DNA of 64,000 bases from Kudoa neothunni. Its lineage: Eukaryota; Animalia; Cnidaria. This document shows, in pieces, positions 16,305 to 46,574 of this stretch. The notes beneath the pieces are model-generated. The model saw only the letters and a program-made list of their open reading frames with translations. It was not told the DNA's origin and ran no database searches. A program made the translations under genes and the position numbers. The stretch is from positions 8,999,209 through 9,063,208 of the forward strand of contig OZ199840.1 in assembly GCA_964304625.1 (NCBI GenBank), in the 5' to 3' direction. Every line of letters begins with the position of its first letter. The stretch's first letter is position 1.

Positions 16305-19300
16305 CTTTTTCCTTTGTTCCATATAGACGCAATGAATTTAATCGCATAAAACCAAGAAAATATTAATCAATATTCATATTGTTATATTTAATATGTTTTA
16401 TTCTTTGGAAATAAAAAATATAAGCTTAAAAAAATAATTTGTTCGATGCGCGGTAACATCAAATTAATTTCCATTATTTTCAATGGGGAAAAATTATTCG
16501 GAGTACTAACACAGAACTAGAATTAATAATAATAGAGATTCGAGGTCGCACTGTATATACGTCATTAATTTTATTTTGATATATTAAATTAAAATATGAG
16601 TTATTTCTTTCATGGATATTAAAAATTAGCTCTAATTGTTTATTGGAATTGTGGCGGTAATAATAAAATAGATATTCTATATTTTCAAATAACAAAAAAT
16701 AAAATAAATTTCAATATTCATTCATGAAAGAAATCAATTTATGAATAGTTATTATTTTCACGAAACTTCGGAGTATTCATTTTAAAGGACTGAATAGGAA
16801 CCAATGAATCTATCTATTTAAAGTAATATACATAATGTATGTTCTTCGTTAATTCTCTATAAAGAAAATGATAGTTATGAGGATAAATCTTAGATTTGTC
16901 TCATCAATATTTCTTCTATTTTTTGTTTGTAATTTTTATTTAAATTATAAATTTTAATAATTATTTAGTATGTGAAAGGCATGTTCTTCCCATTAATATT
17001 GATAATAATATTATGAAATTGAGATATTCGAGCAAGCAAAACAAATATATTATCTCCCTTTCAGGATATGATATTGAAAATAGTTACAAAAAATGTGCAC
17101 TCCAATATTATGATCATAAAGGAGCACCTACTAGCATCGCTTCTACTTGCAATTATATAACTGATGCTGCTATGGAGTCAACTGCAAAGATATGCATTTT
17201 TAACTGCAAAAAAATAGAATTAATGTCGGCCGGGGAAGAATTAAAATCCGTTAAATTTTTAAAATGGTGCCAAGGAACTGATGATAATAATGTTAAAGTA
17301 TGTCCTAATAAAAAGACTTTCACGATCAAAGGTATGTACTTAAAAAATCGTTTTTAAAGTAGCATCTAATAGATCTTTACCTAAAAAGTGAGTTTAATGT
17401 CACAAAAACAAAATAATATATTCAATGTTAACGTTAAAACTAAAGTCAATGGAGGTTTCGCTGTTAAAGAAGACTCTGTAAAAAAATCTGAACAGCGGTC
17501 AGATGAGGATTTTTATGAAAAAAAATATGTTACATTTAAAACTAAATCATACCAATCTACGTATTCTGTTGAATTTATTGATCGGTCACCAGAAATATTA
17601 TTAAATCCACAAATACCTGAGGTGGATTGGTTTATTGCAACTGGCTCTAAAAGTAACAACTATTATACAATTACACTCCAAAATCCAAAACCATCTCTGT
17701 TATGTTACTTTGGAATAAAAGACATATATGAAGTTCATTTTTCTTCTAATTGTTCGAGTATGAAAAAAGCTGGGCCATGTATTCAGCCATGCTATAAAGC
17801 AACATTATTTCACGATTCAAACTTGAATTATGCCCAAGTACTTGTGAAACATTATGAAAAGATAATTCCGAAAGAATTTATTCAAACTATAACATGTAAG
17901 TTCTAACTAATTTAATTTATTCTAATCCATTTCACAGTTACTACTGATCAACCTGCTGTCACTACAACTGGAAAAAACGAAGCCACCGTTAGTTTAGCTA
18001 ATTTAAATAAGAATGGAAATGGTGCTGTAGAAAATGGAGCAGAGATAAAAGAAATTAAATTATTTGAAAAAAAACTTGGAATTGAAAGTAATGGAAAAGA
18101 TCTTACATCAAATAGTGGCTCTAAAGAATTCGGTGCAATAACTATAAATTCGCTTGAGCCATTAACAGAGTATATTTTAAAGGTTAAAATAACTGGACTT
18201 ACAACCGTAGATTCACCAGAAGTTAAATATTATCACTGCTATATTTATTTCAAAACTAGGGGTAATTTCAAATTTCTAAAAAACTTATTAATATAAAATA
18301 GGTGATGCATTAACGGGGGATAGTAGTCTTAATCCCACTGCTGTGCCAGGAGACAATACTAGGCTAACTTTGAATCTTGAAAATTTATTCTCAAATGGTA
18401 GTGGTAGTGGCATAACATGTGAGCTATATTATTCAATTGATGGAAGTGAGACTTCAAAATTGCCTGCTACATGTGAAGACACAAGTGGTAAAAAATTTTG
18501 TTCCGGTGCTTGTAATGGGAACTTTGAAATTATTAACCTCGATCCTAAAACTAACTACAGAATAACTGTATGTTCCAGGGGATATACATGCGTTGAAAAT
18601 TCTCAGGCTGAGAGTAATGTTTTCAAATGATAATGTAATAATCAGTAAAAAATAGCTGGCGGAATCGAAATATCATTAAATCCTACCAAAAATGGATCAG
18701 ATAAGATAACTTCAATAACAGTGACAAAATCCGGAAGTGAAATTGCCGATTTTGGAGAATCATGGGGATACGTTCTACTGGAAGAAGCATCCAACCGAAT
18801 AATAACAGATTGCTTGAATAGCGTGTGCAATCCCGCTATCAATACTCAATCCGGGACTGTTAAGATAGAGATTTCATGTGCTGATCTTAACGCAGACGTC
18901 TCATATAAAATAGTTATTATTAATAAAGATTATTCCAAGCCAAAGAAAGCCAAATTTAAGTGTATTTATTTTTATTTTGTAACATTCTCTTTATTTCCAT
19001 AGATGACTTCGAAGAAGGTTCTCAGGATATGATTTTATCCTCTAGTAACTCGGGACAAAATTATAAGGTCAAATTCAAGGGTGAATTGTCAACGAAAGGT
19101 GAATTAGTGTGCACTGTCAAAGAATCAAAAGATGACCTAACTGCCTACGAAGATTTTGAAAACAACGGAGAAGGAATTAAGAAGAAGTGCAAAGAACTTT
19201 CAACAGAATTTGGTATTAATATCAACATTCAGAATAAATTTAAATATATTTCCGTTACTTATCCAGATTCTAAACCAGTAACCACATTAGATTTAGTAAC

Positions 19301-22300
19301 ATTCGTTGTGATTGAAAAATTTTTTTCAATGTTGAGCCTATTTCTAAGCAATTTCGACTAGGATGAAAATAAAACCCAAGGATTAACGTCAGATGGATCT
19401 CAACCACAAAAATCATTAACGTCACAACCAATAACTTTTAATTCTGGGAAAGTTTATTCCTACTATATGGGTAAAAAATAATTTAATAATAAGTTTAACA
19501 TCTTTTTAGATTTGTACGAAGAAATAACGCACATGGCTAAATTGGATGGAGACAAAATTAAGTTATCTTTAAATAAATGTCCATCGTCCTGTAAAGCGTA
19601 CAAAGATGAAAATATAGTAAATCCTACATCAGAAACATGTAATGGTGACCAAACAACGCTAAAATATTATTCTATTCAATTCGATGAGCTTGTTAAAGAT
19701 TATTATATAAGTTGTCCGGAATATTTTGATTTTCATTATTTTTACGATAATACATTTGTTCAAAATCACGCACCGGTTTTCAGTAGATTTTACTACGAAT
19801 TAAGCGACAATGGTGAGAATAATGCATTATCAGTTAAACTGGTTAACGAAGAGCCATCTAAAATGTGCACGTTTGAATGGATTGATGCCACAGCATCCGC
19901 TTCGAATAATTTTTTCTCAAACGTGTGCGAGAATAAGAACAACTGTTTTTATAGTATGTGTAGTAGCTATAAATTTGGAAGTTTGCCAACAACCGTAAAG
20001 GCAGTGAAAATACGAGTCCTAAAATTAGGAATGAAACCTTCGATTGGTTATCAAAATAATATATACTTACGTAATACCTATAAATATCTAATAAATATAT
20101 CGTAATTTCTAGTGAAACAAGGAGAGGATGTTTCGGTTGAATCATCAGGAACAAAAATTAAGATCAACATTAGTGCTAATAATAAAAATGAACATGGTGG
20201 GACTATTACTGGTACAGATGATGTTAAATGCACCCTAACTTTATGGAACACATATGCTCCATTGGTTAGCGAAACTGGAAGGATATCTGTAAAGGATCCA
20301 TCATCTTGCGAATTTAAGGAAATGGAAATAACGCCGGTTCTGATTCATTTACCTAACGACATTATGGTGTCTATAACAAATATACCAGATTATTCACCTA
20401 GGAAATATTTTTTCAATAAAGCGAGTATTTTTTATATTAAAATTGTTTTAAAATATTTTTTAGGCCAAATTACTGAACTTTCCTCTGGTGATATTTCAGT
20501 TACTGCTACTTATAGTGGCTTCAGAATCGCTCAAAATACATTCAGCGCAACAGCCACCTGCACTATTTACGTTAGGGAACACAACAAATTATATTACCCT
20601 GCTATTTGTTCAGGCAATGTGTTATGTGTAAAACCTTGCAGCTCGGATTTTACCATCATTGGGCTTTATTCAGATACCACCTATGAGCTCAAAATTGTTC
20701 CTAGTGGAGCAAACAATATTAAAACTATTTCCAGCATAAAGACAGGTAAATAATATTAATATTTAGTTAAATAACAAATAATAGTCGGAAAAAATGTTCA
20801 ATTTGAAATTTCAAATGATTCTAAGAAGAATACTCTTATAATACAACCTCACCCATCTTTCGATGATGCTGGTAGTATAGACTGCTATTATCAGTTGTAT
20901 AAACACGATGGAAACCAAAGTAAGGACACCGGGTTATTTTTATTAACATTTTTGTAGCTTCACCTACAAAAATCATAAAGTCCTACATCGGTTGCACAGA
21001 TAGTGAAAATATTAAAAAATGCGATAAAATTCAGTTTGATAAGAACATATACGATAATAACTATAACTACAGATTGATGATATATGTACCTGATAAATTG
21101 AAACCTGTCAAACTATCAATACCAGGTAACATATGTATCTACTCTCAATCAACATATTTTTATAGCTTTTACTCGAAGAGGAAAACTTGAACAAAAGCTT
21201 ATTCCTTATAATGTTAACGCTGCTGAGAAGTTTTCTATTACATTGTTAGAATTTCCCGTGAATTATAAATGTGCCATAAAGATATCGAGTTTAACAACAA
21301 CTCCTGAATTCAACAAACCAACAGGTTGTACGGGATTAAATGGAGATGACTGCATAATGGAATGCGTTAAAAATGAACTTGAAATTGGGAACATAAATTC
21401 AAAATTAGATCGATATTTATCAGTTTGTTACGGAAAAAAACGACGAGGAAGCAAAAAAATGTAAAAAAGTTCAGGTTTTTCCAATAATAATGAGTAATTA
21501 ATATATATCATATCACCTTTTGAATTATATGGTTAAAATATACATAATAAATAAATGAACTAACAATAATCTTTAATATAAAATTTATTCAATTAAGGTA
21601 ATCCTATTTTTAGATTATAATCAAAAAAACACTTATTCAATATCTCATATTGATGGAAAAATTACTTTGTCCTTCAAAACAAACTCAGTTTCGGATTGGA
21701 AAGTTGAGTATGACGGAAAAAATGACACACATAGTGATAAGTCTGTAAAGGACTTAGAAGTTACAACGTATTCCGACACTATAGACAGCAAATCTGCTAC
21801 ATTTTCAACTGACAGGTCAATGGATTATTACAAATTTAGTTCAACTTTACTGTGGCCTGGTTTATTCTATTTTTTAAATAATAGTTATTTGTATGATAAG
21901 ACACTCCTAAAATCTCAGATTATTTATTCTGTTTCAAAGACTGATAGCCCTAAAAAAATACAATTAAAATTCTCTCCTGGTCCATATAACGATGAGATTT
22001 GTCATATCAAAGTATTTGAGGTCGATGGTAATGGAGCCGAACAAAAAGATAAAGTTCTGAATGGATGCACAAATGCAGAAAAAGAATGTTTTCGACTTTG
22101 TCAAGACAGCATTATCAATTTGACAGAAGAAATAAATAAAGTTGGTGTTACAATAAAACGAAGATTTGATGCGAATGGATTCAAACAATTCTTTATAAGT
22201 AACATTTAATTAAAATTCATTAATAAAACTTTATAGGAGGTGATAGTGGTATCGATTTAAGTGATATTACTAATCAGGGGGTCACAATTCGGAGACTTAA

Positions 22301-24243
22301 CGTTTACAAAGCTATTAATGGGGGAGGTGCAGATATTGCATGTATCATTAAAGTATACAGAGCAACTACTTTTTCTAATGAAGAAAACGCTCGATGCAAT
22401 GACAATGGTGAATGCAATACTACATGTGGAGAGTCATTTTCTATTAATAAATTGGAAGTTGGAACAAATTACATCGTTTCTGTATCGATAAGCAATATTG
22501 GAATTAGTGACTATACAAAGAAAATAGCATTTCGAACAAGTATCTGTACATTCTAATAATAATATTTCAAAAGTGTTTAGCTGGGGGAACAGATATAAAT
22601 GGAAATAATTCAATTCCCGACATAAAGGGCGGAAACGCCACTATAACACCATTTTCTGCAGATGGTTCGTTACCAATATGCAGAATTTATCTTAACAAGA
22701 ATGGTGACTCCAATCCTAAATATATGGCTACTTGTGACGAAATTGGAGCGTGCGAACATAAATGCGACAATGAGTTCAAAATTATAAATCTAATATTAGG
22801 AGCAACTTACGAAATGATTGTTGAACCATCCGATGGTAGAAAGGAGAAGAAATATGAAGTTCAAACGAGTATTTTACTTAAAAAGTCTTATTATTAATAA
22901 AACTTTTTAGCAAATACCGATGTTACTATCACATCTACGTTAAACGGAGATAGTGATTTGAAAGTTGAAGTGACTTGGGCTGAAAAAGATGATAATTCAA
23001 GGTGTCCGTTTTTCTTGCAGGAAAAAAAAGATGAAGGTGTGTCGGGAGAAACTGTTACATGGTGTAATGATGATGCAGAATGTTCGGCTAATAATTGTAG
23101 TATCAACATCAATAAATTGTCAAAAGAAAAAGATTACATATTGAAACTGAAAGTGAAGGATTATTCACTCTATAAAGATACAATTATTCTATGTAAATGC
23201 ACTTTTTGACAATTTTATAATTTGTATAATCGAATAATATTTATAAAAAAGACTCAAAAATGGTTCAAAGGATTGGGTAATAGAGTTTCAATAATATTGT
23301 TTTATTATAATAATTTTTTAGTAAATTAAATACAAAAATTCAACAAGTTAATATATTTATAGAAGGTGAAAATGTTAGGAGCGATTACACCAATATTGAC
23401 GTGGATGATATCGCACAAAAAAATAAAAGTTGCGGAAGAAAGGTGAATAATTTGTCCAATATTTTTATAACGATTTATTTAGTATAATTTCTGTCTAAAA
23501 AAATACAATATAAATATAAAATGTTTAGAGAATAAAAAAGTAGACGATTATGAAGCTGCAAAGAACAGTCATTCGTAATTTTTGGTGAAATTTTCAAATT
23601 TTAACATTGTTAAGGTCATTGGGCCCTTACATGTAATAAAGTAAGCAATATGAAATTTTATAACCATTTTTAGATTGTATGCGATGATACCCATCGTGGC
23701 CTCACTATTTATGGTGATAGGACTGGTAGTTCACAGAAAAAATTCCAAAGATACTACTCATGATCTCTAAAAATTAACGGTCCATCCTGCAGACATGTAG
23801 TTTTTAAGAATATATTTTATTAGAATAAAACTATTATATATTTAATTTTCTTGAGATTTCTTTCAATAGTTAAATTATGTAAATGTCCATGCTTATTCTA
23901 AAATTGGGATTGTATGGGTATTGTATATATATATATATACAATTTATACATTCAAAAAACGCAAGGATTGTTTTTATTAAATAAATGTATACATTTCTTG
24001 AATAAAATTATAAGTAAAGTCCTAAGTTTGTGTTATAAATTATAAAAAATTAAATTTGAAGATTATTTAGATATATGAGTATTAGATTTACTAAAAAATC
24101 ATTTTAGAAGTAATAACTTTGTCTAGTGCTTATAATTAGTCCAAAAGTAATTCTGCATTAGAAATAATTTTAATAATATAATTATTAAACACATTAATAA
24201 ATTTACTGAATCAAATATAAATAATTTCTACGTGGTATTTAAT
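16305..24243 (+). repeat. Segmental duplication, copy A (~7.9 kb)
   Basis: Colinear with 38585-46574, from the upstream TTTCCTTTGTTCCA motif through the 3' flank. Ends approximate. Confidence 0.95.
16868..23770 (+). CDS. Large Cys-rich, FN3-like multi-module type I membrane protein, copy A (~23 exons, ~1,900 aa)
   Basis: Signal peptide MIVMRINLRFVSSIFLLFFVLC. Modules of ~95-105 aa, mostly one per phase-1 exon, with C..C..CxxxC and LxPxTxY-type motifs (LEPLTEY, LDPKTNY, LYSDTTY, LEVGTNY, LILGATY). TM YILYAMIPIVASLFMVIGLVV, tail HRKNSKDTTHDL*. Two +1 A-run frameshifts (17404-17408, 21434-21440) are absent from copy B. Confidence 0.85.
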
Positions 24244-24704
24244 TCATTTGGCTGCTTTCTCGCTCTCGCCGTTAGTTGATAAGTAACATAACGCGTGGAG
24301 TATTATTAGTAAATGACACTTGCATATCGTATGGTAATTTAGGAGATTCCGATACGTTTTATTTGTATACAATAAAGTCGTGGAGACTGTCTCATTTATC
24401 ACCTTGTGCAGAAAAATCTAGCTAATTCCATATTTTATAAGGAGTCTGATTTTAATTTAATTATTGATGCAATGGGTTTAGAAAAATTCAGAAAATTCAA
24501 AACACACGCCTAATTAATGTACCTGAATAATAATAATAATAACTAATTATTCTGTTATAATCTACATTCATATATTCAAGTGTATACATGAATTCTTTGA
24601 TTTTTTTTATACCAAAATTTTTAAAGTCAATTTGGCTAAAATTCATATCAAAGGTCAGATACAAACTCGAGAATGTAACATAAAATGCAACATAATAGAT
24701 AATA

Positions 24705-26517
24705 GAGAGTGGCTATTTGCATGGATGAGAATATCTCCTAGAATACGTGAGTTATTTAAAAAATTGATCTAACAATTACAATAGACTATACATGCCCTAT
24801 AAAATTTTATAATTTTTTATAACCGGGGAATTTGTCCATTAAAACCATATTTAAATCATCTCTCATGTACCAAAATCGTACTTTTCTTGATTTAATAACA
24901 TTATTAAATGCTTATAAACAATATGTTAGTGAATTAAGTTTTATTGCCTCCAATAAAATTGATTGCTGTCATGTTAGACTTTGCGCACACAAACCATTCG
25001 CTGCCAGCCTTGCGTGGTCTCACAATTTTATGATTGTCGTACACTGAGCGTTAATTCTCATATGATCTAAATTGTATCAAAATTCATAGATTTTATTATT
25101 CTGCGAAATAATTTTATGCACTAAATCATTTGGTTACGTTGAATCTATGCAGAATTTAAAATGTGAATCTCCTCTAACACCCTTTTTGAGAACTGTACTA
25201 TTTAACTCACGTTTCACTTAAATTAAAATATGCTAGATGTATCTATATTTATTTCTAGCGCATCTTTCGTCATAACGACTATACAAGATTCATTTAACTT
25301 GACTCATAATAAATGCATGTATCGTATGATGAATCTAAAAATTCGATCAAATGGTTATTAAATTAATTAGTTGATGTTTCCCTTGGCTGAAGATATAAAT
25401 ATGAACAATTATAACAGATAAATACCAATGCCTAAGAAAATTCCTTAGGATGACGTTTGAACCTGTTCACTTCTTATATGTTAGTTTCATCACTGTCAAA
25501 TATTCCAACGTGAAGATAAAATAGGAATATATGGAATAAAATCGGATAAAAAAACTTTAAAATGGAAAAGTTTCGATGAAATAGTTTGCAGTATTAGCGA
25601 CGGTAAAATTGCTTCAATATGTGATGAATTTTATGGGTACGGATTTTACAATCTCGATATTTATTTTGATAAAAGATAGAAACTAATCGTAAGTGAATGG
25701 ATAAATTGCTAAGTTATGCTGAAAATTATTTTGATAACTGCAAGAATTCTTCATATCGTCCTTCTTTTTCTTGAAGTCCATCAGAATTGAAAGAAAACAT
25801 ATAATGGTTACCAAATATTTACAGTCATATGATACAATAAGTAACAACGAAACTTTCCAGCAATATTATGTTCGCCTGGCACTTTACTGATCTAATATTA
25901 TTATGTAGGAAATATCCAAAATAAAAATTATAGGGAGGAGGAAAATGAGTAGAGCGTCTGTTATTGAGCTCCCGAAAAGATTATCAAGAATTTAATTAAA
26001 TATTTTACTGATAAAATTTTGATTTAATATTGATTTAAACAATTTGACACCCAATGATTTTATAAAACTAGCATTTTAATAAATCGATAAAATGATTTTC
26101 AAGCCAAAGAGCATAGAATTAAAACATTAAATTGATAATAACAACCGACCGATAAAAACATCATTTCATTAAAAAATAAGAGGTATTTCGGTAATCTCAT
26201 TTTTTTATTATTTTTAGCCACCGGAATTAAGTGTGAAAATTCGTCTCGTATGCATGCCTCATTTGAGTTTATAACGTACGATTTGGTAGCTAATTTGAAT
26301 TAATTGGACCGAATACCGTAAATAACCTTTGAATATAGTTATTAACTCCAGAAAAGTACGATTTTTATGCATAAGAGGTGATTAAAATATGCATTTAATA
26401 AACAAATTCTCCAATTAAAATCATTAAAAAAATATAGCCTATCGTAATTGTGAAATCAAATTTTTAATATCCCACATATTCTAGGAGATATTCCCATCCA
26501 CGCAAATAACCACGTCC
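24705..26517 (+). mobile_element. Degenerate Mutator-like element (1.8 kb) related to the 8173-11169 element
   Basis: ~190-bp TIRs (24705-24899 vs 26338-26517); 9-bp TSD TAGATAATA/TAAATAATA. Terminus GAGAGTGGCTA resembles GGAAGTGGCTG. Remnants TIITDK and LIC*FHHCQIFQR at about 25405-25510. Confidence 0.85.
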
Positions 26518-26942
26518 TAAATAATATACAGTTTAATTATAGATATCAAAATTAGACAGAAGACAGTTTAAACAACATCGTAGTTTTTTTGAAGATATGG
26601 ATTATTTCTAAATAACCAAAAATGTCGACACTTAATTACAGCCTCTGTATAAAACTGTGTTTCTTTAAAAGATAACAAAGCTACGATTTTACATGAAAAT
26701 ATCGAGCAATAGACTATGTAGGTTGAATAGATCTAATATAAACTATTGTTTAATTGCCCTGTTTCGTAGGATTAAGCAAAATAAATTATGAATTAAATAA
26801 ATTTTGATATCTCATTTTTTGAATAGAAAATAATTAATAAAAAACAACCGATAATATTACTATACGCATTACATGATTTAAGCCAGGACTAGCGAAAATT
26901 GCGAAATGAATATATTATGATTGATTTTTAAATTTATTCAAG

Positions 26943-30466: not shown

Positions 30467-31963
30467 TCATTCTTCTGCATCTTCTTCTTCTCGATCGTTT
30501 TCTATCGTCTCCTCTATTCCAACATCTTCACCATTGTCATAATGGCCACTACAGATCGCTTTGCATTTCTCCCCTGTTTCAAAATTGTTGGAATTCCCAT
30601 CATATCCTTTGTAATAAAACGCGTGGCATTTATGGTCAGATTGTTTATAATAGTATCTCTTGACTTTAAATATATTTGAGTCGTTGCCCGAGTTGTTGAC
30701 CACAACTCCCTTTTTCTTTCTAACACAAGTTTCTTGGATTACAATTTTCTTTTCATAATTCTCTAAATTTTTTCCGAATTCAAAATAGTTTTAAGCACAA
30801 TGTAAATATGAAAATTCTATATAATTTGAATTTTTTGAATGAATTAAAAATGTACCTGCCCCGCAATAGCTATGGCACATTTCCATGGTGGGGAAATTAT
30901 TTTTCTCTGGATCAAAGTCCGCTTTTCCTGCGTGTTTCCCTGTTTCCATGCGTTTACACACTTTTTTCGTTTTGTCATAATAATATCTGAACTCAACATC
31001 ATCTTTCGGTTCATCTGGTTTAGTTATAGCAGTTTGAGATGGACCAATATCGCATGCAGCTACTCTCTTTTTATGTTGTGGCACATCACTAGTATGTGTG
31101 CTTGGGTATGCTAAAATACATGAGACATTGATGTAAATAATAAATATACGAAAACATTTTTTAACACATTCACCAAACGAGCCGAAAACCCCTCTTGTGT
31201 TTGAGTCTAATGAGACTGCTGCATAAGCACATTTACTTTTACCTTTATCAGCAATAATTGCTGTGCTTGGATCTTTGTCTTTAACATCGGGTCTAAGGTC
31301 GCAGTCCAATATATTCGGAACTTCGTAATGTGTACGATTCTGAAGTGTAACTATTTTATCATCAGCATTTGTAAGCCCACCATTCCTTTTATCTACAAAA
31401 CATGATTTAATTCTCTAGAGATGCTCATATTTTTTTTACTTAAACAATAAAACCTGCATTCTTCTAGATCGTTGTAACGATTAAAGCTCCCTCCGCATCC
31501 ATTATATTGAAAAGGAACACAATCGGCTTTAGTTTGATCAAAATAGAACTGCGGATTTGTATTTGTATTTTTCACGCAATGTCCTGGATGATGTGGTTTT
31601 TTGCACCCTTGAAGCTTTTCTTTTGTCGTCAACTGTCCTACTATAATTGGTCATAAATTTACATTAATTTAAAAAAATACAATGCATCTCGCATAGTCCT
31701 TTTGATGCGAAATTGTTATAATTTCCTTTGATACCTCGGTATTCAAGAGGTTTGCATTTAGCATCTTGGATGTCTATGAACCATCGATCGATGACATTAT
31801 TCATATTTCTTTCTCCATCTACAGGCCAATCTCCCTCATCTCTTTCATAAGAGGGTAATATAGGATCTAAAGGATTATCAAAACGAGATGAAAATGTTTA
31901 TTTACCTGACAAAAAAGTGGGAAAATATAGCACAACAAGTATCTTGAATAACATCAGATTCAT
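30467..31963 (-). CDS. Secreted multi-Kunitz/BPTI protein (5 domains, acidic C-terminal tail), 6 exons
   Basis: Signal peptide MNLMLFKILVVLYFPTFLS. Domain 2 is canonical (C..PGHC..FYFD..C.PFQYNGCGGSFNRY..C...C). Domains 1, 4 and 5 keep R(W/Y)(F/Y)..C..NNF..C; domain 3 is the most degenerate. Phase-1 introns separate the domains. Tail ..EETIENDREEEDAEE*. Confidence 0.88.
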
Positions 31964-32099
31964 TCATGACAGACAATCCGAGTAATAAAAATTATGACGA
32001 AGATGGATTATCAAGTGCACATAAAAAATTAAATCAATAGTTTATTGGATAATAAGATTAAAACAAATTAATTAAGAGGTCACGAACTTTTTTTGTTCG

Positions 32100-34070: not shown

Positions 34071-36903
34071 GTATGCGACACCGCCCGAGGTTCGTGCACA
34101 GATACTGTAGTACTGAATTTTAGCTAAATTTTAAAAGAAATAAAATATTTTATTCAAAAAAAATGCGCTGTCGAATTTGATAAGAAAATTTCTCCTAACT
34201 TTTATTACAAAAATCCACTGTGAACGTATCACACGATTTTGTTAATACATTGACTTAATCCGGGGGTCGTCAAACTACGACCAACTTACGTTTCCATAAT
34301 GACTTGTAAAATTTAGTTATTTAGTGTTACTCTGTAATTAAATGGTACTCAACTTCTATAAAAATTGTCTTGTTAGATTCATAGTTAAGTTCTTTCTTAA
34401 TAATTGTTATTATTAAAATTAATCATAAAAATTGAAAAACTTGCATTCTCGATACTCGTATAGTAATATTACCCTTTATTCGTTTTCAAATATCAAAATA
34501 TTTAATGATATATGTATAAGAAATCGTAATTTTGTCAGAAAACTTAAAAACTTGGATTTAAATATTGAATCTTTTATTGGTTTCATGACTGTTTAGTGAC
34601 GTATGCAACAATCAGGGTTTCAATCATTCTTATTGATTTGTGTTCATTTTCACGCGCCCTGTCTCTTCGATTTATCGTGCGAAAATGGCGGGTTATGGAA
34701 GAAAGAGAAAAATCGACCTTGAGTGTCGAATGTTTAACGATGAGTGGAATATAAAGTACTTTGTTATTAAATTTGGCAAAAAAGCAATATGTGTTATTTG
34801 TGACAACACTGTCGCAGTACTGGAAGAATTTAATATTCGCAGACATAACGAGACAAAACATTCGTCGAAGTATTCAAGATAAAATGGAATACTCCGTACG
34901 GAGAAATTCAGATCATTAAAAAATAATTTGTCGTCGAGGCAATTGATCTTCAAAAAAATTATCCATAAAAATGAAGCTACCACAAGAGGTAGTTTTCATG
35001 TGGCCTATTTGGTAGCCAAAAAGGGAACCATTTTCTAATGATGAAATTTCCAAGGAGGCTCTAAAGGACGTGGTGAATGAGGTATGTCCGGAAAAAGCCA
35101 GCTCATTTTCCGAGATAAGTCTTTCGACAAACACAATAGGTCATAGAGTGGAGAATAAGGGTGAAAATATTATTTCGTAATTACGAGATAAAATAGATGA
35201 ATTTGTCTGCTTTTCTATCACCCTGGATGAATCCACTGATGTATCAAACACCTCTTAAATTTTATTTTTCATTAGAGGGGTTAATACTGAGTTGATAGTT
35301 ACAGAAGAACTCCTCTCGGTACATAGCATTAGCATACATGGAACTACAAGGGGTCTCGATTTATTTAACGAGATTGAAAAGTCATTCAAAAATTCCAACC
35401 TAGACTGGAATAAACTTAAATGCGTCACTACTGATAGGGTTAGAACTATGAGTGGAAAAACAAAAGGTTTAGTTGGACAAATATGTAATACGATTGAAAA
35501 CTCTGGTGGACAAAAACCTTTGGCGCCTCATTGTATTATTCATCAACAAGCTCTCTACGTGGAAAATATAGTTACCTGTCATCAGTATTAAATCCCGTTG
35601 TTTCCATTGTTAGTTTTGCCCGGTCACATGGATTCCATCGTAGACAATTTAAGGAATTTTTGGAAGATTCACATGCTGAATACTCGAGTTTGCCATATTA
35701 CACAAATACGAGATGGCTTAGCTGTAGAAAGGTTTTAAGTCGATACTTTGACTCAAGAACAGAAATTGGGTTTTTTTTCTTACTGAACATAAAAATCCTC
35801 TAAATTTGTTAAAAAATGATGATTGAATCTGGAAATTTTCTTTTTTTGCAGATTTGACAGTACATCCGCACGATTTTAATCTTAAATTGCAAAGCAAAAC
35901 AATGTTAATAAACGATTTTTATTCATTAATGAAAGCGCTTCGACAGAAATTGATTTTTTTTAATTCGCAATGAAATAGTAATTGTTTCACTCATTTTTCA
36001 CGTGATAAACATGCCCAACAAAGAAATGTATCTTTTCCAACTACTGTCGCCCTAGACACTTTCCGATTTAACGCTGCGGTTTGATGAGCGTTTCAACGAT
36101 ATTGAGACAATTTCCTCGAATATTTCAATGTTAGAAAATCTTTTTAGATGTCACATCGACCAATTACTTGCAGAGTTGAAAATGGAAATCATTGACCATC
36201 AAGCTAATGAAATATACAAACGTAAATATAATGAAATCAATTTATTACAATTTTAAAAGCTTTTGCCTCATCATGATTTTCCGAATCTTTTATCTTTTAC
36301 TAGTAGATATATTTCAATATTAACACAACGTATTTTCGCGAGAAAAACATTTTCAGAAATGAAATATATGAAATCCGCATACGGAACACAGTTGTGTAAT
36401 GATCGCTAAAATTAAATATTGATGATAAGGATGTCAAAGTTCATATCACAGTGGGATATTATTATACCAGATCTGAAACGACTTCACTTTTCACATAATT
36501 GAAAATAAACTTATTATTTTTTCTGTTATAATTATTTATTTTTATTATTTCGTCCCAAGAATTTTTTATGCGAAGTTATTCAGTTTTCCAAGTTTTTTTG
36601 TTTGAATTTTTAATTCGACCCTCCGAGTAATATCAACAACCCAATCTGACCTTAGCCTCAAAAAGTTTGGAGACCCCTGATCTATATGTTTTCATAAATC
36701 CTCAAATCATACCAATCATATCACGTGAAAATGTTTTTAGTCACTTTGTAGGATGTAAATCTTTTATAAGTTTTTACATATTTTTCTGCGTTAAAATTTT
36801 TTCTTTCCATACGTGTGTCCAAATGGAGCGATATGCCTCTTTATAAAGAATGAAAAATATGTACGCACTCACACGGATTTTCGGTTTACTCTATATAGTA
36901 GAT
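34071..36903 (+). mobile_element. Helitron-like non-autonomous element interrupted by a hAT element
   Basis: One end GCGACACCGCCCGAGGTTCGTGCAC, the other ..CACACGG..CTCTATATAGTAGAT. The same TATATAGTAGAT end occurs inverted at about 57793-57804. Confidence 0.4.
34261..36679 (+). mobile_element. hAT transposon, Buster/SPIN (GTF2IRD2-like) type, with pseudogenised transposase at about 34685-36500
   Basis: TIRs CGGGGGTCGTCAAACT and CAGGGGTCTCCAAACT. Motifs KRKIDLECRMFNDEW, CVIC..NIRRH..H, LDESTD, GTTRG.D, CVTTD, HCIIHQQAL and TRWLS; multiple stops and frameshifts. Confidence 0.93.
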
Positions 36904-37018
36904 GAATTGATTTTGGCATTATCGATCCAAATATCAACTGTTAAGTACATACTATGATGATTGATTATTTTAGTTAATGTATCCATTCTTATATACATAC
37001 GCTCATACCCATTCATAA

Positions 37019-37324
37019 TTATTTTTTAACGCATTTTTTGATTAAAATCTTAAGTCTAGCACTAGGTTCATTGAACTTTTTGCCTAAGTTAAATGTAAAG
37101 TTTATTGTCTCTGTAAACGATGCACTTTCCCTTATTGTAAACGGGGAGATTGTTTCAGCTACAATATTAGCAATTTTAATGTCAAACATTACTTGATCTG
37201 ATACACTTAAATTTACATTGGAGGGAGGTGAAACAAATAATTCATTAATTTTAATATTTTTATTTGTTTTAGCATGTAAATTATATAAGTTTATTTTGTT
37301 TACAATGTCAAACCCCTGGCGCAA
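37019..37324 (-). mobile_element. Possible hAT (Ac/hobo-type) transposase fragment
   Basis: IVAETISPFTIRESASF resembles the hAT PF..VE..GF block; no termini found. Confidence 0.35.
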
Positions 37325-38584
37325 CTTGTTAGGTTGTGAAGATGGGGCTAGTTAGACCTTCTTCATATACGCTTTAGGCACCGCATCGTCATATTAAGGC
37401 AACTTAGATTTATGCGGTAGTGTGGGATTTTAACCCATTAAACATCCTCGTTTTGGAACAACCATTTCCTCAATCATACTCTGGACTAACCCAAAATTAG
37501 TCTGGGAAAGTCGTCTGAGTGCGGGCGTCGGCTCTACAGAAACCCCCTAATGGGTTATTTTTCATTCTTGTACTTTGTCGTTTATGAGCACAAAAGATCT
37601 ACCCTTCCGCCAGTGTTCCCTCCCATTTGGAAGAAAGGCCACGATAAATCGTAGATCCTTGCGATTACTACAGCCTTCCTACTTAATTTTGGATTAGGAG
37701 TACAGGAACGCATGGATCAGACCTCGAAATCGCAACCTCACGGATGTGAGCTCCACCTAACACCACTATGCCATATTGTCCAGGCTATTTAGTAATAATG
37801 GAAAACGCCTTTGCTCATCCTGCTGATAAAATGGGTATTTATTGGATAAGTTCAGTTTCATCAAAGTAACATTTTTACCCCCAATACCATCCTGATACTT
37901 CATCCTATGGGTTGTTAAGTCATTTATAACTTCAAGAAACTTTACACCAAAACCATTTCCGTATTTTCTTGTGGACTATGGAATACAGTTAAAGCTGTTG
38001 GAATTGTTTTATAATAAAATTTTTCCACTTAAATTGCATATAAATAATTGGCAGTGCTTGGCGTTAAGTCACGTACCGAACTCTGATAGTAGCATGGATA
38101 TAACAAAGGTCAAAGTGTATATTAAAACATTACTTTGAGAGATTTTAGTCTTATAGATTTTAGACATTCCATTCATTGAAAATTAACCCGTTGGACATAA
38201 TATTTCAATTAGAAACCAATGGGGCTCAAATTAAACAATGAAGACATCGAGGAGATAGTAGGGATCATTCGGAAGAATTATTTACTGCAGAGCTGCTACA
38301 TTTACGATATAAGGGGTAAAAATACTTGTTTAAAAACGACGTTTAATGAATTTATTTTGATACTTTTTATAAAGATACAGTACTGATGAAAGGAGCAGTC
38401 GAATTTTTTAAAGATATAATTATAAATTTTGTGAGAAAATTTCTGAAATCAAGGAAAAACAATCATAATGTTTTTAACAACTAAACAAGAATAGCTAACT
38501 CAGAAAAAGATCAGACTGGAATCAAATTTTTTTAGAAGTATCCCACAATCAAATAATTCGCCTCTTAACGAACGTGTAAACCTA

Positions 38585-41500
38585 TTTCCTTTGTTCCACA
38601 GAGAACCATTGAATCTGAAGCGTAAAAGCCAAAAAATATTAATCAATATATTCATTTTCTATATTTAATATTTTTTTCTTATTTATAATTAAAAGATATG
38701 CGTTTCTTACATAAATAATAATTAAATTTGTAATTTATTTTATGCGCGGTAACAAATAAAACTAATTTCCATTATCATCCATGCTCAAAAATTATCCGGT
38801 GTACAGACACATTTCTGTGACTGATAAGAGTCTGAGTCTGTGGATAAACTGTATGTACATTAATAATATTATTTTTATATATTCAATAAAAACATAAGTT
38901 GTTTCTTTTGTGGTTTTTAAAAATTAGCTCTAGTTATTTTTTGGAATTGTGGCGGTAATAATAAAATAGACATTCTATATTTTCATATAACACCAATGCA
39001 ACAAAATATCCATATTTATTCATGAAAGAAATCAATTTATGAATAGTTATTATTTTCATGAAACTTCGGAGTTTTCAGTTTAAAGAACTGAATAGGAACC
39101 AATGAATATCTAATCCGATGAATCTATCTATTTAAAGTAATATATATAATGTATGTTCTTCGTTAATTCGCTATAAGGAAAATGATAGTTGTGAGGATAA
39201 ATCTTAGATTTGTCTCATCAACATTTCTTCTATTTTTTGTTTGTAATTTTTGTTTTAATTATAAATTTTAATAATTATTGTAGTATGTGAAAAACATGTT
39301 CTTACCATTAACATAGACAATAATATTATGAAATTGAGATATTCGAACAAGCAAAACAAATATATTATCTCTCTTTCAGGATATGATATTGAAAATAGTT
39401 ATAAGAAATGTGCACTCCAATATTATGATCATAGAGGAACAATTATTGACACCATCCTTACGTGCACTGAAATAACTGATGCGAGCATGGACTCAACTTC
39501 AAAGATGTGCATTTTTGATTGCAAAAAAATAGAATTAAAGTCAACGGGCGAAGAATTCAAAGTCGTTAAATTTTTAAAGTGGTGCCAAGGAACTGATGAT
39601 AATAATGTTAAAGTGTGTCCTAATAAAAAGACTTTCACGATCAAAGGTATGTACTTAAAAAATCGTTTTTAAATTAGCATCTAATAGATCTTTACATAAA
39701 AAGTGAGTTTAATGTCACGAAACAAAATAATATATTCAATGTTACCGTTAAAACTAAAGTCAATGGAGGTTTCGCTGTTAAAGGGGAATCTAGCGAACAA
39801 TCTAGACAATCGTCGGATAGTGCTTTTTATATAGAAAAATCGATTAAAATATATACTAAATCACATAAAACTAATTATGTTGTTGAATTTCTCGATCGGT
39901 CACCAGAAATATTATTAAATCCACAAATACCTGATGTGGATTGGTTTATTGCAACTGGCTCCAAAAGTGAAAACTATTATACAATAACACTCCAAAATCC
40001 AAAACCATCTCATTTATGTTACTTTGGAATAAAAGACATTAATGAAGTTCATTTCTCTTCTAATTGTTCGAGTATGAAAAAAGCTGGGCCATGTATTCAG
40101 CCATGCTATAAAGCAACATTATTTCACGATTCAAACTTGAATTATGCCCAAGTACTTGTGAAACATTATGAAAAGATAATTCCGAAAGAATTTATTCAAA
40201 CTATAACATGTAAGTTCTAACTAATTTAATTTATTCTAATCCATTTCACAGTTACTACTGATCAACCTGCTGTCACTACAACTGGAAAAAACGAAGCCAC
40301 CGTTAGTTTAGCTAATTTAAATAAGAATGGAAATGGTGCTGTAGAAAATGGAGCAGAGATAAAAGAAATTAAATTATTTGAAAAAAAACTTGGAATTGAA
40401 AGTAATGGAAAAGATCTTACATCAAATAGTGGCTCTAAAGAATTTGGTGCAATAACTATAAATTCGCTTGAGCCACTAACAGAATATATTTTAAAGGTTA
40501 AAATAAGTGGACTTACAACCGTAGATTCACCAGAAGTTAAATATTACCATCGATATTTTTATTTCATGACCGCAGGTAATCTCAAATTTACAAATGATAA
40601 AATAATTTAAAATAGGAGCTGAATTAACGGGGGCAAGTAGTTTCACTCCGACTCTTGTGTCAAGCGAACACACTAAATTAACTCTGGATCTTAAAAATTT
40701 ATTCTCAAATGGTAGTGGTAGTGGCAAAACATGTGAGCTATATTATTCAACTGATGGAAGTGAGACTTCAAAATTTCCTGCCACATGTGAAAACAATAGT
40801 GTTAAAAAATTTTGTTCTGGTGCTTGTAGTGAGAATTTTGAAATTATTAACCTTGATCCAAAAACCAACTATAAAATAATTATATGTTCCAGAGGATATA
40901 CATGTGCCGAAACAGCTACGAAAGCGAGTAATTCTTAAGATAATAATGTTATAATCAGTTTAAAATAGCTAGTGGAATCGAACTTACATTAAGTTCTACA
41001 AAATGTGAAGGACAAAAAAAAACTACAATAACAGTGACAAAATCCGGAGGTAAAAGTGACGATTTTAGGGAATCATGGGGTTACATTCTACTGGAAGAAA
41101 ATTCTAAGCGAATAATAAATGATTGTTTGAATGGCAATTGCAACCCTATCATTAATATTGAATCCGGAACAATTACAGTCGATCTTTTATGGTCTAAACT
41201 TGACGCTGACGTCTCTTATAAAGTTGTTGTTGTGAATAAAGATAAAGCAAAGCCAAAGGATACAACCTTTGAATGTATTGGTTTATTGTGAGATATTCTC
41301 TTTATTTTTATAGTTGATATCGAAAAAAATACTCAGGGTATGATTTTATACCACGACAAATCAAAAAAAATGCATATGGTTAAATTTGAAGACAAACTTA
41401 AAGAAAAAAATGATAAGAAATGCACCGTCAAAAAATCCAAAGATGACCTAACTGCCTACGAAAATTTTGCAAATGACAGCAAAGAAATTAAAACGATGTG

Positions 41501-44500
41501 TAACGAACTTTCAACAGAATTTGATATTGATATTAATATTCAAAATAAATTTAAATATATTTCCGTAACTTATCCAGATTCCAAACCTGCTATCGTATCA
41601 CATTCAGAAACATCGGTCGTTATCGAAATAATTTTTTCATTGTTGAACCTAACTCTAATTGCTTAGGATGTAAACGCCCACAATGTCAGAGAAACACTGC
41701 CAGTTAAGGGTAAAGATCAGACACAATTAACAACAGAAAAAAAATTTAACTCTGGAAAAGTTTATTCCTATTATATGGGTATAAAATAATATAATGATAA
41801 GTTTAACAACTTTTTAGATTTTTACGAAGAAATAAGTCATATAGCTAAATTGGATGGAGACAAAATTAAGTTATCTATAAATAAATGTCCATCGTCCTGT
41901 AAAGCGTACAAAGATGAAAATATAGTAAATCCTACATCAGAAACATGTAATGGTGACCAAACAACGCTAAAATATTATTCTATTCAATTCGATGAGCTTG
42001 TTAAAGATTATTATATAAGTTGTCCGGAATATTTTGATTTTCATTATTTTTACGATAATACATTTGTTCAAAATCACGCACCGGTTTTCAGTAGATTTTA
42101 CTACGAATTAAGCGACAATGGTGAGAATAATGCATTATCAGTTAAACTGGTTAACGAAGAGCCATCTAAAATGTGCACGTTTGAATGGATTGATGCCACA
42201 GCATCCGCTTCGAATAATTTTTTCTCAAACGTGTGCGAGAATAAGAACAACTGTTTTTATAGTATGTGTAGTAGCTATAAATTTGGAAGTTTGCCAACAA
42301 CCGTAAAGGCAGTGAAAATACGAGTCCTAAAATTAGGAATGAAACCTTCGATTGGTTATCAAAATAATATATACTTACGTAATACCTATAAATATCTAAT
42401 AAATATATCGTAATTTCTAGTGAAACAAGGAGAGGATGTTTCGGTTGAATCATCAGGAACAAAAATTAAGATCAACATTAGTGCTAATAATAAAAATGAA
42501 CATGGTGGGACTATTACTGGTACAGATGATGTTAAATGCACCCTAACTTTATGGAACACATATGCTCCATTGGTTAGCGAAACTGGAAGGATATCTGTAA
42601 AGGATCCATCATCTTGCGAATTTAAGGAAATGGAAATAACGCCGGTTCTGATTCATTTACCTAACGACATTATGGTGTCTATAACAAATATACCAGATTA
42701 TTCACCTAGGAAATATTTTTTCAATAAAGCGAGTATTTTTTATATTAAAATTGTTTTAAAATATTTTTTAGGCCAAATTACTGAACTTTCCTCTGGTGAT
42801 ATTTCAGTTACTGCTACTTATAGTGGCTTCAGAATCGCTCAAAATACATTCAGCGCAACAGCCACCTGCACTATTTACGTTAGGGAACACAACAAATTAT
42901 ATTACCCTGCTATTTGTTCAGGCAATGTGTTATGTGTAAAACCTTGCAGCTCGGATTTTACCATCATTGGGCTTTATTCAGATACCACCTATGAGCTCAA
43001 AATTGTTCCTAGTGGAGCAAACAATATTAAAACTATTTCCAGCATAAAGACAGGTAAAAAAATAATTTTTAGATCAACTAACATATAATAGATGGTCAAA
43101 CAATTCAATTTGAAGTTTCAAATGATTCAACGAAGAATGATCTCATAATAGAACCTCAAAAAGCTTTAAATGACATTAGTGGTAGTGACTGCTATTATCA
43201 GTTGTATAAACACGATGGAAACCAAAGTAAGGACACCGGGTTATTTTTATTAACATTTTTGTAGCTTCACCTACAAAAATCATAAAGTCCTACATCGGTT
43301 GCACAGATGCAAACATACAAAAATGCAATAAAATTCAGTTTGATAAGAACATATACGATAATAACTATAACTACAGATTGATGATATATGTACCTGATAA
43401 ATTGAAACCTGTCAAACTATCAATACCAGGTAACATATGTATCTACTCTCAATCAACATATTTTTATAGCTTTTACTCGAAGAGGAAAACTTGAACAAAA
43501 GCTTATTCCTTATAATGTTAACGCTGCTGAGAAGTTTTCTATTACATTGTTAGAATTTCCCGTGAATTATAAATGTGCCATAAAGATATCGAGTTTAACA
43601 ACAACTCCTGAATTCAACAAACCAACAGGTTGTACGGGATTAAATGGAGATGACTGCATAATGGAATGCGTTAAAAATGAACTTGAAATTGGGAACATAA
43701 ATTCAAAATTAGATCGATATTTATCAGTTTGTTACGGAAAAAACGACGAGGAAGCAAAAAAATGTAAAAAAGTTCAGGTTTTCCCAATAATAATGAGTAA
43801 TTAATATACATTATATCACCTTTTGAAATATATAGTTAAAATATAATTTATAAAAAATAGAACTAACAATAATCTTCAATATAAAATTCATTCAACTTAT
43901 ATAAACAATTTTGTAGATTTAAATCAGAAAAACACTTATTCAATATCTCACTCTGATGGACAAATTACATTTACCTACAAAACAAATTCTGTTTCAGATT
44001 GGATTATTGAGTACGATGGGAAGAATGACCAACATAGTGAAACGTTTAAAAATGGATTTGAAGTAGAAAATTATTCCGACACAATACAAAGAAAATCTGA
44101 TATATTTTCAATTGATAGATCCATGGATTATTACAAATTTAGTTCAACACTACTGTGGCCTGGTTTATTCTATTATTTGAATAATAGTTATTTGTATGAT
44201 AAGACACTCCTAAAATCTCAGATTATTTATTCTGTTTCAAGGACTGATAGCCCTAAAAAAATACAATTAAAATTCTCTCCTGGTCCATATAACGATGAGA
44301 TTTTGTCATATCAAAGTATTTGAGGTCGATGGTAATGGAGCCGAACAAAAAGATAAAGTTCTGAATGGATGCACAAATGCAGAAAAAGAATGTTTTCGAC
44401 TTTGTCAAGACAGCATTATCAATTTGACAGAAGAAATAAATAAAGTTGGTGTTACAATAAAACGAAGATTTGATGCGAATGGATTCAAACAATTCTTTAT

Positions 44501-46574
44501 AAGTAACATTTAATTAAAATTCATTAATAAAACTATATAGGAGGTGATAGTGTATCGATTTAAGTGATATTACTAATCAGGGGGTCACAATTCGGAGACT
44601 TAACGTTTACAAAGCTATTAATGGAGGAGGTGCAGATATTGCATGTATCATTAAAGTATACAGAGCAAATACATATTCCACCGAAACAAATGCTCAGTGC
44701 AATAACAATGCCAATGAAAATGGTGAATGCAATACTAAATGTGAAGAGTCATATTCTATTACTAAATTGGAAGCTGGAACAAATTACGTCATTTCTGTAT
44801 CGATAAGCAATATTGGATTTAGTGACTATACAAAGAAAATATCATTTCGAACAAGTATCTGTACATTCTAATAATAATATTTCAAAAGTGTTTAGCTGGG
44901 GGAACAGATATAAATGGAAATAATTCAATTCCCGACATAAAGGGCGGAAACGCCACTATAAACACCATTTTCTGCAGATGGTTCGTTACCAATATGCAGA
45001 ATTTATCTTAACAAGAATGGTGACTCCAATCCTAAATATATGGCTACTTGTGACGAAATTGGAGCGTGCGAACATAAATGCGACAATGAGTTCAAAATTA
45101 TAAATCTAATATTAGGAGCAACTTACGAAATGATTGTTGAACCATCCGATGGTAGAAAGGAGAAGAAATATGAAGTTCAAACGAGTATTTTACTTAAAAA
45201 GTCTTATTATTAATAAAACTTTTTAGCAAATACCGATGTTACTATCACATCTACGTTAAACGGAGATAGTGATTTGAAAGTTGAAGTGACTTGGGCTGAA
45301 AAAGATGATAATTCAAGGTGTCCGTTTTTCTTGCAGGAAAAAAAAGATGAAGGTGTGTCGGGAGAAACTGTTACATGGTGTAATGATGATGCAGAATGTT
45401 CGGCTAATAACTGTAGTATCAACATCAATAAATTGTCAAAAGAAAAAGATTACATATTGAAACTGAAAGTGAAGGATTATTCACTCTATAAAGATACAAT
45501 TATTCTATGTAAATGCACTTTTTGACAATTTTATAATTTGTATAATCGAATAATATTTATAAAAAAGACTCAAAAATGGTTCAAAGGATTGGGTAATAGA
45601 GTTTCAATAATATTGTTTTATTATAATAATTTTTTAGTAAATTAAATACAAAAATTCAACAAATTAATAGATTTATAGAAGGTGAAAATGTTAGGAGCGA
45701 TTACACCAATATTGACGTGGATGATATCGCACAAAAAATAAAAGTTGCTGAAGAAAGGTAATTAGTTTGTCCAATATTTTTATAACAATTTATTTAGTAT
45801 AATTTCTATCCAAAAAATACAATATAAATATAAAATGTTTAGAGAATAAAAAAGTAGACGATTATGAAGCTGCAAAGAACAGTCATTCGTAATTTTTGGT
45901 AAAATTTTCAAATTTTAACATTGTTAAGGTCATTGGGCACTTACATGTAATAAAGTAAGCAATATGAAATTTTATAACCATTTTTAGATTGTATGCGATG
46001 ATACCCATCGTGGCCTCACTATTTATGGTGATAGGACTGGTAGTTCACAGAAAAAATTCCAAAGATACTACTCATGATCTCTAAAAATTAACGGTCCATC
46101 CTGCAGACATGTAGTTTTTAAGAATATATTTTATTAGAATAAAACTATTATATATTTAATTTTCTTGATATTTCTTTCAATAGTTAAATTATGTAAATGT
46201 CCATGCTTATTCTAAAATTGGGATTGTATGGGTATTGTATATATATTATTTACACAATTTTTAAAATTCGATGTCATTGGAGTCGACAAACACAAGGATT
46301 CTTTTTATTGAATAAATGTCTATATCAGATCAATATAATTATAATGAAAGTCTTAGTTTATTTTAATAATTAATAAAAGATAGAATTGAAAATTATTTAA
46401 ATATTTCAGTATTAGATTTACTAAATAAATCATTTTAGAAGTAATAACTTATATCTAGTGCTTATAATTAGTCCAAAAGAAATTCTACATTAAAAATAAT
46501 TTTAATATTATAATTGTTAAACAGATTAATAAAGCTACTGAACCAAATATAAAAATTTCTACATGGAATTTAAT
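38585..46574 (+). repeat. Segmental duplication, copy B (~8.0 kb)
   Basis: Colinear with 16305-24243 at an offset of about 22.3 kb. Confidence 0.95.
39182..46084 (+). CDS. Large Cys-rich, FN3-like multi-module type I membrane protein, copy B
   Basis: Same exon structure, signal peptide and TM/tail as copy A. Single-base homopolymer differences at 44301-44304, 44552, 44960-44962 and 45733-45738, and a TGA at 45749-45751 in copy A's frame. Confidence 0.8.

Follow-up and report, generated by a model that had tools for sequence, protein, structure and literature searches.

Mosaic identity between two tandem genes for predicted giant surface proteins in Kudoa neothunni points to segmental gene conversion

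Among the described systems closest to the locus considered here, the msg family of Pneumocystis comprises ~80 paralogous surface-protein genes that are mosaic through segmental exchange (PMC10622565), and the Alr proteins of the cnidarian Hydractinia carry one to three immunoglobulin (Ig) domains and one fibronectin type III (FN3)-like segment, many of them with tails containing immunoreceptor tyrosine-based activation or inhibition motifs (ITAM/ITIM) (PMC9546547). Within the Myxozoa, expanded genes resembling variant surface proteins (VSP), RIFIN/STEVOR and ETRAMP have been found in Sphaerospora molnari and proposed to serve immune evasion (bioRxiv 10.64898/2026.02.11.705288), and antigenic change has been reported from immunology, the genes behind it being largely unknown (PMC8481699; bioRxiv 10.64898/2026.02.11.705288). 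Here we analyse a 64,000-nucleotide (nt) stretch of the genome of K. neothunni, a myxozoan that parasitises tuna muscle (contig OZ199840.1, positions 8,999,209-9,063,208; hereafter the window), which contains two giant genes in tandem, A and B, whose products are predicted surface proteins. We consider it likely that ectopic conversion between these old tandem paralogs homogenises them in segments, producing mosaic alleles in which old variation is newly combined. As a mechanism, conversion between tandem duplicates is ordinary; the locus matters as one at which conversion appears to turn paralog divergence into allelic diversity, amounting to ~8% of residues between probable alleles, and as a concrete large surface-protein family to which myxozoan antigenic change might be related.

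Patchwork identity among copies A, B and C

Self-comparison of the window returned one long direct repeat (A 16253-24243 versus B 38530-46574) with 89.8% identity. Base-level alignment resolves this repeat into substitution-free runs of 389, 1,182, 130, 455, 292, 567, 251 and 229 nt, between which lie blocks with 15-28 mismatches per 100 nt. Runs of at least 80 nt make up 3,589 of the 6,852 aligned nt (52% of the gene), and the longest run covers 737 polymorphic columns, whereas the 95% maximum under permutation was 61; chance comes nowhere near such a pattern. The run around the second tract of Table 1 (A19570-20753 = B41878-43059) spans 1,182 columns with a single 2-nt gap at its end. Alignment and permutation bear out the abrupt alternation of identical and diverged segments described in a first-pass annotation of the window, which had placed both kinds of block correctly and quoted accurate example peptides for A and B. 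Introns share the state of the block in which they lie, with no A/B differences inside the tracts and 18-26% outside. Most tract ends fall inside exons, with ~4 of 14 within ~15 nt of a junction by hand count, near the prediction from intron density. Module-wise exon shuffling was rejected on these grounds, and the related proposal that whole modules are shuffled on a constant transmembrane (TM) segment and tail is unsupported also because TM and tail differ at 14-29% of residues among paralogs.

The polarity of the mosaic was judged against three dispersed copies, D, E and F, which are ~80% identical to A (many other family members are 65-70% identical). In the blocks first described as hypervariable, A and B differ by 20-32%, equal to the divergence of either from D, E or F and of these from one another, and thus no higher than between any two subfamily members. 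D, E and F diverge by 0.29-0.30 in AB-identical codons versus 0.28-0.33 in AB-divergent ones. This equality, the behaviour of the introns and the background-level A-B differences together argue that the identical blocks are derived and that the divergent blocks are unconverted background. The distal 5′ flanks carry the mark of an old duplication in their divergence (Table 1).

Selection was assessed from the ratio of nonsynonymous to synonymous divergence (dN/dS) by the Nei-Gojobori method (NG86) and with site models M0/M1a/M2a in our own code; codons at single-nucleotide breaks and at an in-frame TAG were skipped. The first-pass annotation had held that a dN/dS well below 1 in the variable blocks with no recombination signal would speak against exchange. 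The ratio there is indeed below 1 (0.55 [0.43-0.72], versus 0.42-0.44 for D/E/F pairs at the same codons), but the recombination signal is strong; the small excess over D/E/F is to be expected, the blocks having been picked for amino-acid change. Only a 57-codon linker has a dN/dS near 1. Across the family dN/dS is ~0.4, and ~35% of sites are near neutral. When A, D, E and F were fitted to a site model, 1.6% of sites fell at ω ~6 (M2a versus M1a, P=0.0008), a weak test given four sequences, a star tree and sensitivity to recombination; this signal lies entirely in the AB-identical part, and M2a was not favoured in the AB-divergent blocks (P=1; 0.62), which show no positive selection. The divergent blocks thus appear to be under moderate purifying selection. 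Background-level divergence, dN/dS and the site models led us to reject hypervariable or positively selected blocks; what is left is a weak class of sites across the family.

A 200-N gap follows the last base of the window, and the next contig begins within a third copy, C. Flank scores of B and C (9709/9741 and 17002/17135 bits versus self) correspond to ~0.1-0.3% difference and, because the 23-kb flank is ~99.8% identical, C is probably B's second haplotype, retained in the assembly where two contigs overlap. In the public assembly, the ~23-kb overlap across the scaffold gap is a probable unpurged haplotype duplication. In A coordinates, C matches A at 18910-19448 (165 sites), then B at 19463-20879, A again at 21006-21023, B at 21480-21938, A at 22322-22527 and, from 23095 into the flank, B, so that it switches across blocks of 165, 11, 37, 5, 74, 17, 22 and 29 informative sites. 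A private block of C resembles D, E and F. All three partitions of A, B and C occur in long blocks, with one stray single-nucleotide polymorphism (SNP) and no three-allele site, and repeated exchange is therefore required. B and C differ at 102 of 1,285 residues.

Autocorrelation in the quartet A, B, C, D was 0.78 versus 0.46 for the null. Exchange seems to extend beyond this locus. A and B share no tract >60 nt with D, E or F, which were rejected as donors of the divergent blocks on that basis; recent conversion is thus local. Family comparisons covered ~17 members, several partial, from 20 loci. Members of a distant subfamily share identical runs of 93-208 nt and are 1-4% divergent in single 300-nt windows versus ~20% nearby; one pair on chromosomes C1 and C3 (L009/L013) is 1% apart in one such window and 19-26% apart in several adjacent ones. 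Tree signal was clustered at P≤0.01 in 52 of 70 quartets of that subfamily. These patterns indicate that paralogs exchange segments throughout the family as a lasting trait, interchromosomal exchange included. The clustered identity, the incompatible partitions and the involvement of introns and silent sites are together those expected of interlocus gene conversion, and the early suggestion that surface-protein paralogs convert one another in segments is upheld by the long-block partitions of A, B and C and by the older tracts in dispersed paralogs.

We therefore favour the following sequence of events. A and B would have begun as divergent as their dispersed relatives (~20% of nt, dS ~0.45), and ectopic gene conversion, possibly with unequal crossing-over, between neighbours 22 kb apart would then have overwritten about half of the gene recently, in tracts that range from tens of nt up to 1.2 kb and independently of exon or module borders. 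The identical blocks would be conversion tracts and the divergent blocks those yet to be overwritten. Haplotypes carrying different tracts would come to differ, as B and C do, at ~8% of residues despite near-identical flanks. The same process may have left the older tracts found across the family, between chromosomes too.

Logan contigs from four public runs, all of a single sample, were aligned to B and compared with the assembled copies. An A-type contig (X4 r26) carries 40 of 40 expected differences, a B-type contig (X3 r13) shows 0 differences over 253 nt, and a C-type contig (X3 r18), with 28 differences versus 30 expected, holds C-private and A-type sites 29 nt apart. Another (X3 record 15) crosses from the big identical tract to sequence specific to B/C with no substitution. 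A divergent piece within that tract is exactly paralog D (28/22/15 differences), and no hidden divergent version of the tract occurs among the contig pieces listed. Contig X4 r21 has the A state at four isolated sites with the B state beside them, and X4 r28 (window 45113-45464) has 16 differences in 352 nt and fits no copy compared, which hints at a further allele or a partly converted paralog. None of the four runs has the extra base at B44301, which is hence an assembly error; B's own state at 44625-44842 was not seen in the contigs, as expected if minority bubbles were dropped.

Predicted proteins and the gene family

The sequence-based model of gene A has ~21 introns, mostly of 38-42 nt, and ~1,900 codons, and it was searched and folded exon by exon. 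The predicted protein has a signal peptide, an ectodomain of ~1,800 amino acids (aa) in which other domains accompany the FN3-like modules, stalk micro-exons, one TM helix and a 12-aa tail that lacks tyrosine in A, B and C. By this model the products of A and B are type-I membrane proteins of ~1,900 aa built of Cys-rich FN3-fold modules, presumably located at the cell surface. There are 62 Cys per 1,900 codons (~3%), and a diplomonad-type VSP, with >10% Cys and CXXC repeats, was rejected. Two introns are long (21494-21613, 120 nt; 23193-23251, 59 nt) versus ~40 nt otherwise, and the first is short in several distant paralogs.

An in-frame TAG in the linker (A19359-19361) is aligned with one in B (41666-41668) and also occurs in C; a hydrophobic, T-rich stretch precedes it, and the position is open in D, E, F and the distant members read. 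Part of the linker may be an in-frame intron. Both genes have phase-0 GT donors upstream, so the TAG could be the acceptor of such an intron, possibly a gained one; it may instead end a short anchored or secreted product with a hydrophobic tail, or be a lesion. The first-pass view that Cys framework and frame are mostly retained must be qualified as regards the frame, which in the sequence as assembled is not fully kept, being broken by this TAG and by six 1-nt homopolymer-type differences (A17404, A~21434, A23417, B44301, B44552 and B44960). Upstream of the TM exon, two candidate [D1,2] twin introns are kept in 10 of 10 copies covering them. In both stalk introns the inner intron would split the G/T donor, an arrangement that the reading frame to the TM exon needs, and partial splicing would place a stop before the membrane anchor. 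Those papers on [D1,2] twin introns that our search returned nearly all concern fungi.

At least 10 exon-sized modules align with a common Cys pattern and an FN3-type end motif. The AlphaFold model of one module type, the representative exon of Table 1 (predicted local distance difference test, pLDDT, 76.8; 54-row alignment), matches the FNIII domain of sDscam (7y8s) with Z 11.1 and a root-mean-square deviation of 2.2 Å over 85 residues (Foldseek probability 1.0), and predicts the seven-strand β-sandwich of FN3 for that type. At the profile level, 16 of 54 modules match Pfam fn3 (PF00041) at E≤0.1 (best E 1.1e-4), and the module exon of A scores 14.2 bits where the gathering cut-off is 25. Exon-by-exon searches found no Ig family match, the N-terminal exons not having been folded. 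The most conserved exon, of 186 aa, had no PDB or Pfam match, and its model reached a pLDDT of only 40.6; the Atlas hinted at an F5/8-type domain (0.90, low recognition), which we take as no more than a lead. A MACPF hint for exon 3 (0.82) was at chance level and was rejected, and a word-index protein search with one exon gave no match.

A genome-wide profile search with the conserved exon as marker found, by hand count, 57 full-length open copies (C included), ~10 broken or split copies and 5 distant ones, or about 70 loci. They lie in interstitial clusters on all three chromosomes (C1, C2 and C3) and do not form a subtelomeric archive. Taken with the gene models, these counts point to a large repertoire of surface-anchored paralogs. 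In paralog F (L006/L007; G000:C1:10453513-10454001) the conserved exon is missing ~100 nt from its end, where a stop occurs; F is possibly a pseudogene. The same exon order recurs in gene fragments (L021-L024) from the European Nucleotide Archive metagenome ERZ28624939 and run SRR33849685, at 23-64% amino-acid identity. They probably come from other myxozoans and, the two samples being unrelated, the family extends beyond this assembly. Neither fibronectin nor surface proteins are mentioned in the K. neothunni genome paper (PMC12239612), and our literature search found no paper linking myxozoans to an expanded FN3 membrane family; this family of giant surface proteins is apparently undescribed. 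As to role, we lean slightly towards host-facing adhesins or coat proteins whose repertoire diversity would come from duplication and conversion.

Table 1. Coordinates of the genes, identity blocks and predicted elements (window positions; A, B and C denote the three copies)
Feature	Position	Strand	Remarks
Gene A	16868-23770	+	Exons placed by reading frame and by GT-AG sites that 11 aligned copies share
Gene B	39182-46084	+	Tandem paralog 22.3 kb downstream of A; exon structure as A
5′ flank of A	16253-16867		Homologous to B 38530-39181; distal part 13-28% divergent
Identical tract 1	A17742-18130 = B40056-40444		389 nt; includes intron 3
Identical tract 2	A19570-20749 = B41878-43057		Two introns included; C differs at 1 site
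Identical tract	A21024-21479 = B43328-43782		455 nt
Identical run	A21939-22230		292 nt
Identical tract	A22528-23346 = B44843-45662		Runs A22528-23094 (567 nt) and A23096-23346 (251 nt), one SNP between
Largest block read as unconverted	18235-19569	+	A-B dS ~0.5; dN/dS 0.47 at 18235-19274, as D/E/F pairs
C-private block	22190-22293		A=B; C with 17 substitutions, family-like
Repeated stretch	41221-64000 and G000:C3:9063409-9086190		Offset 22,980 nt; first 4.9 kb = copy C
Linker	19275-19445	+	57 codons; 58-90% amino-acid divergent in every pair; dN/dS ~1
Most conserved exon	19512-20069	+	186 aa; dN/dS ~0.2; family marker
Representative module exon	22239-22538	+	Predicted FN3 fold; 4-Cys pattern
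Candidate [D1,2] twin intron 1	A23276-23362	+	Internal 45 nt, external 42 nt
Candidate [D1,2] twin intron 2	A23442-23528	+	Internal 40 nt, external ~46 nt
Candidate twin introns in B	45592-45678 and 45757-45842 (approx.)		
Last exon	23674-23770	+	Predicted TM helix and 12-aa cytoplasmic tail without tyrosine

The rest of the window holds several other features. A multi-Kunitz gene lies between A and B (30467-31963, minus strand; PF00014 match), and the many copies of this region genome-wide, at 76-81% identity, make it another expanded family. Mucin-like, Thr/Pro-rich single-pass membrane open reading frames (ORFs) at 50002-51684 and 6675-7310 (both minus) have similar TM and tail ends, the former containing a ~1.4-kb array of a 27-nt tandem repeat. 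Fragmented transposase-like ORFs (8519-10445) sit between ~240-nt inverted repeats at 8217-11163, MULE (Mutator-like element)-like by eye, and transposon remnants lie at 24709-26513 and 34640-35803. A COQ5/UbiE methyltransferase gene with an in-frame intron occupies 1897-2816 (minus; PF01209, E 7.7e-35); homologs of COQ5 retrieved by a search were all bacterial. A weak search for nematode cuticle collagen, run with no positive control, gave no match.

Competing explanations

The K. neothunni assembly (40.2 Mb, three chromosomes and a mitochondrion, GC 30.4%) was made from yellowfin tuna data with hifiasm-meta and Hi-C, and haplotypic duplication was seen before purging (PMC12239612); the version used here totals 40,260,978 bases in 4 contigs, with a (TAAACC)n array at one chromosome end, the motif and placement that the paper also reports. 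Collapse, mis-correction or the joining of haplotypes in tandem at low coverage could in principle mimic a mosaic, and six 1-nt errors in 14 kb and the resemblance of C to an unpurged haplotype overlap are in keeping with such an artefact. We nevertheless regard it as very improbable. The outer flanks of A and B are unrelated, on which ground we reject two haplotypes joined in tandem; no gap separates the genes, and the 2.3 kb upstream of B are single-copy. Long-read correction cannot make 20% divergence identical. Successive switches are separated by <1 kb, a distance shorter than a read, independent contigs span the junctions (the passage from C-private to A-type sites among them), and the contig pieces gave no sign of a concealed second version of the big tract. 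A possible, if doubtful, variant of the conversion reading is that C is the only gene on the other haplotype, formed as an A/B fusion by unequal crossing-over with deletion of the 14-kb spacer, or that it belongs to another parasite genotype within the fish. Its A-like start (18910-19448), its end in B's flank and, weakly, the low depth on the shared tract suit a fusion, but its repeated switches go beyond a single crossover, so that conversion is needed anyway, and the A/B-mixed sites of X4 r21 and the unassigned X4 r28, with its hint of further alleles, fit poorly with C as sole gene. Decay of A and B into pseudogenes, with the patchwork as neutral turnover, seems improbable. The TAG in all three linkers and the ~10 family loci broken in the marker exon would suit decay; against this, the TAG occupies the same aligned place in two contexts that are ~40% divergent, every other exon is stop-free, and dN/dS is <1 both upstream and downstream of it.

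The remaining alternatives concern function. The first-pass annotation had likened the locus to Hydractinia allorecognition clusters, and the cnidarian lineage, the one FN3-like segment and exon-per-domain structure of Alr (PMC9546547) and the allelic polymorphism of B invite that comparison; with at least 10 FN3-like modules, neither V-set/I-set Ig architecture nor ITAM/ITIM, a tyrosine-free tail of 12 aa and loci scattered over the genome, descent of an Alr-type locus from cnidarian ancestors is extremely improbable. A true antigenic-variation system, in which one or a few members are expressed at once and conversion is selected under fish antibody pressure, would be compatible with conversion as we propose it, though we think it rather unlikely. 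It accords with the parasitic setting, with a predicted signal peptide, TM segment and short tail, with mosaic alleles 102 residues apart, with the family-wide dN/dS, near-neutral sites and small ω ~6 class, with the size of the family relative to 5,316 predicted proteins (PMC12239612), and with stage-specific antigens reported in myxozoans including K. thyrsites (PMC8481699). On the other side, the divergent blocks lack positive selection, the ω ~6 test is fragile as described, the genes are intron-rich, intact-looking (57 full open marker exons) and spread along all three chromosomes rather than telomeric, and no expression site or promoterless archive was seen, no search having been aimed at expression sites. 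Somewhat speculatively, and with low confidence, one may picture a Kudoa variant-surface-protein system of ~70 giant Cys-FN3 genes with ongoing segmental conversion that shows in the two haplotypes of a single infection, selective expression and anchoring gated by the twin introns; if true, it would provide a molecular basis for myxozoan antigenic variation in an animal parasite.

Several observations weigh against the conversion reading itself. The assembly was built on ~7x HiFi k-mer coverage (PMC12239612), and the mosaic was judged from that assembly and from short-read contigs, in which blocks cannot be phased once an identical run exceeds ~31 nt. On the identical tract the contigs are only 1.1-1.5x as deep as on single paralogs; as a hint only, this favours three copies or fewer over four. 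With an in-frame TAG in each of A, B and C, it is less certain that a full-length protein is made, and among public runs no RNA run was found to contain the sequence; RNA was too sparse in the assembly study of K. neothunni (PMC12239612).

Relation to known systems

The locus can be set beside several known systems. As in Alr, the Kudoa genes encode predicted single-pass membrane proteins of a cnidarian, with one domain per exon, an FN3-like fold and polymorphism, but the proteins are far longer, have no detected Ig domains and no ITAM/ITIM tail, and are not confined to one chromosomal complex. The FN3 fold (Z 10-11) and an "L.P.T.Y" end motif are shared with sDscam FNIII, LAR/DEP-1 type phosphatases, fibronectin and tenascin; unlike these multi-FN3 ectodomains, to which they are 10-21% identical, the Kudoa modules each have four conserved Cys, and the proteins carry neither a catalytic nor a signalling tail. 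Sequence matches that extend over whole modules at similar length came only from fragments in the two other samples. The VSP-like genes of S. molnari are likewise expanded myxozoan surface-protein genes; their products have >10% Cys, CXXC motifs and 300-700 aa, as opposed to ~3% Cys, ~1,900 aa and FN3 modules here.

In organisation the family resembles Pneumocystis msg (PMC10622565), also a large paralogous surface-protein family made mosaic by segmental exchange. The msg genes are subtelomeric and silent, one being retrieved for mutually exclusive expression, whereas the Kudoa genes are interstitial, intron-rich and FN3-based. In mechanism, studies on the RPP8 family of nucleotide-binding leucine-rich repeat (NLR) genes (PMC6771003) and on human segmental duplications (PMC3790853) describe a similar picture, in which conversion between tandem duplicates leaves identical tracts on old divergence and feeds allelic polymorphism. 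What sets the Kudoa case apart is that conversion would act in a reduced animal parasite, within a very large predicted surface-protein family, and that older tracts appear to link different chromosomes.

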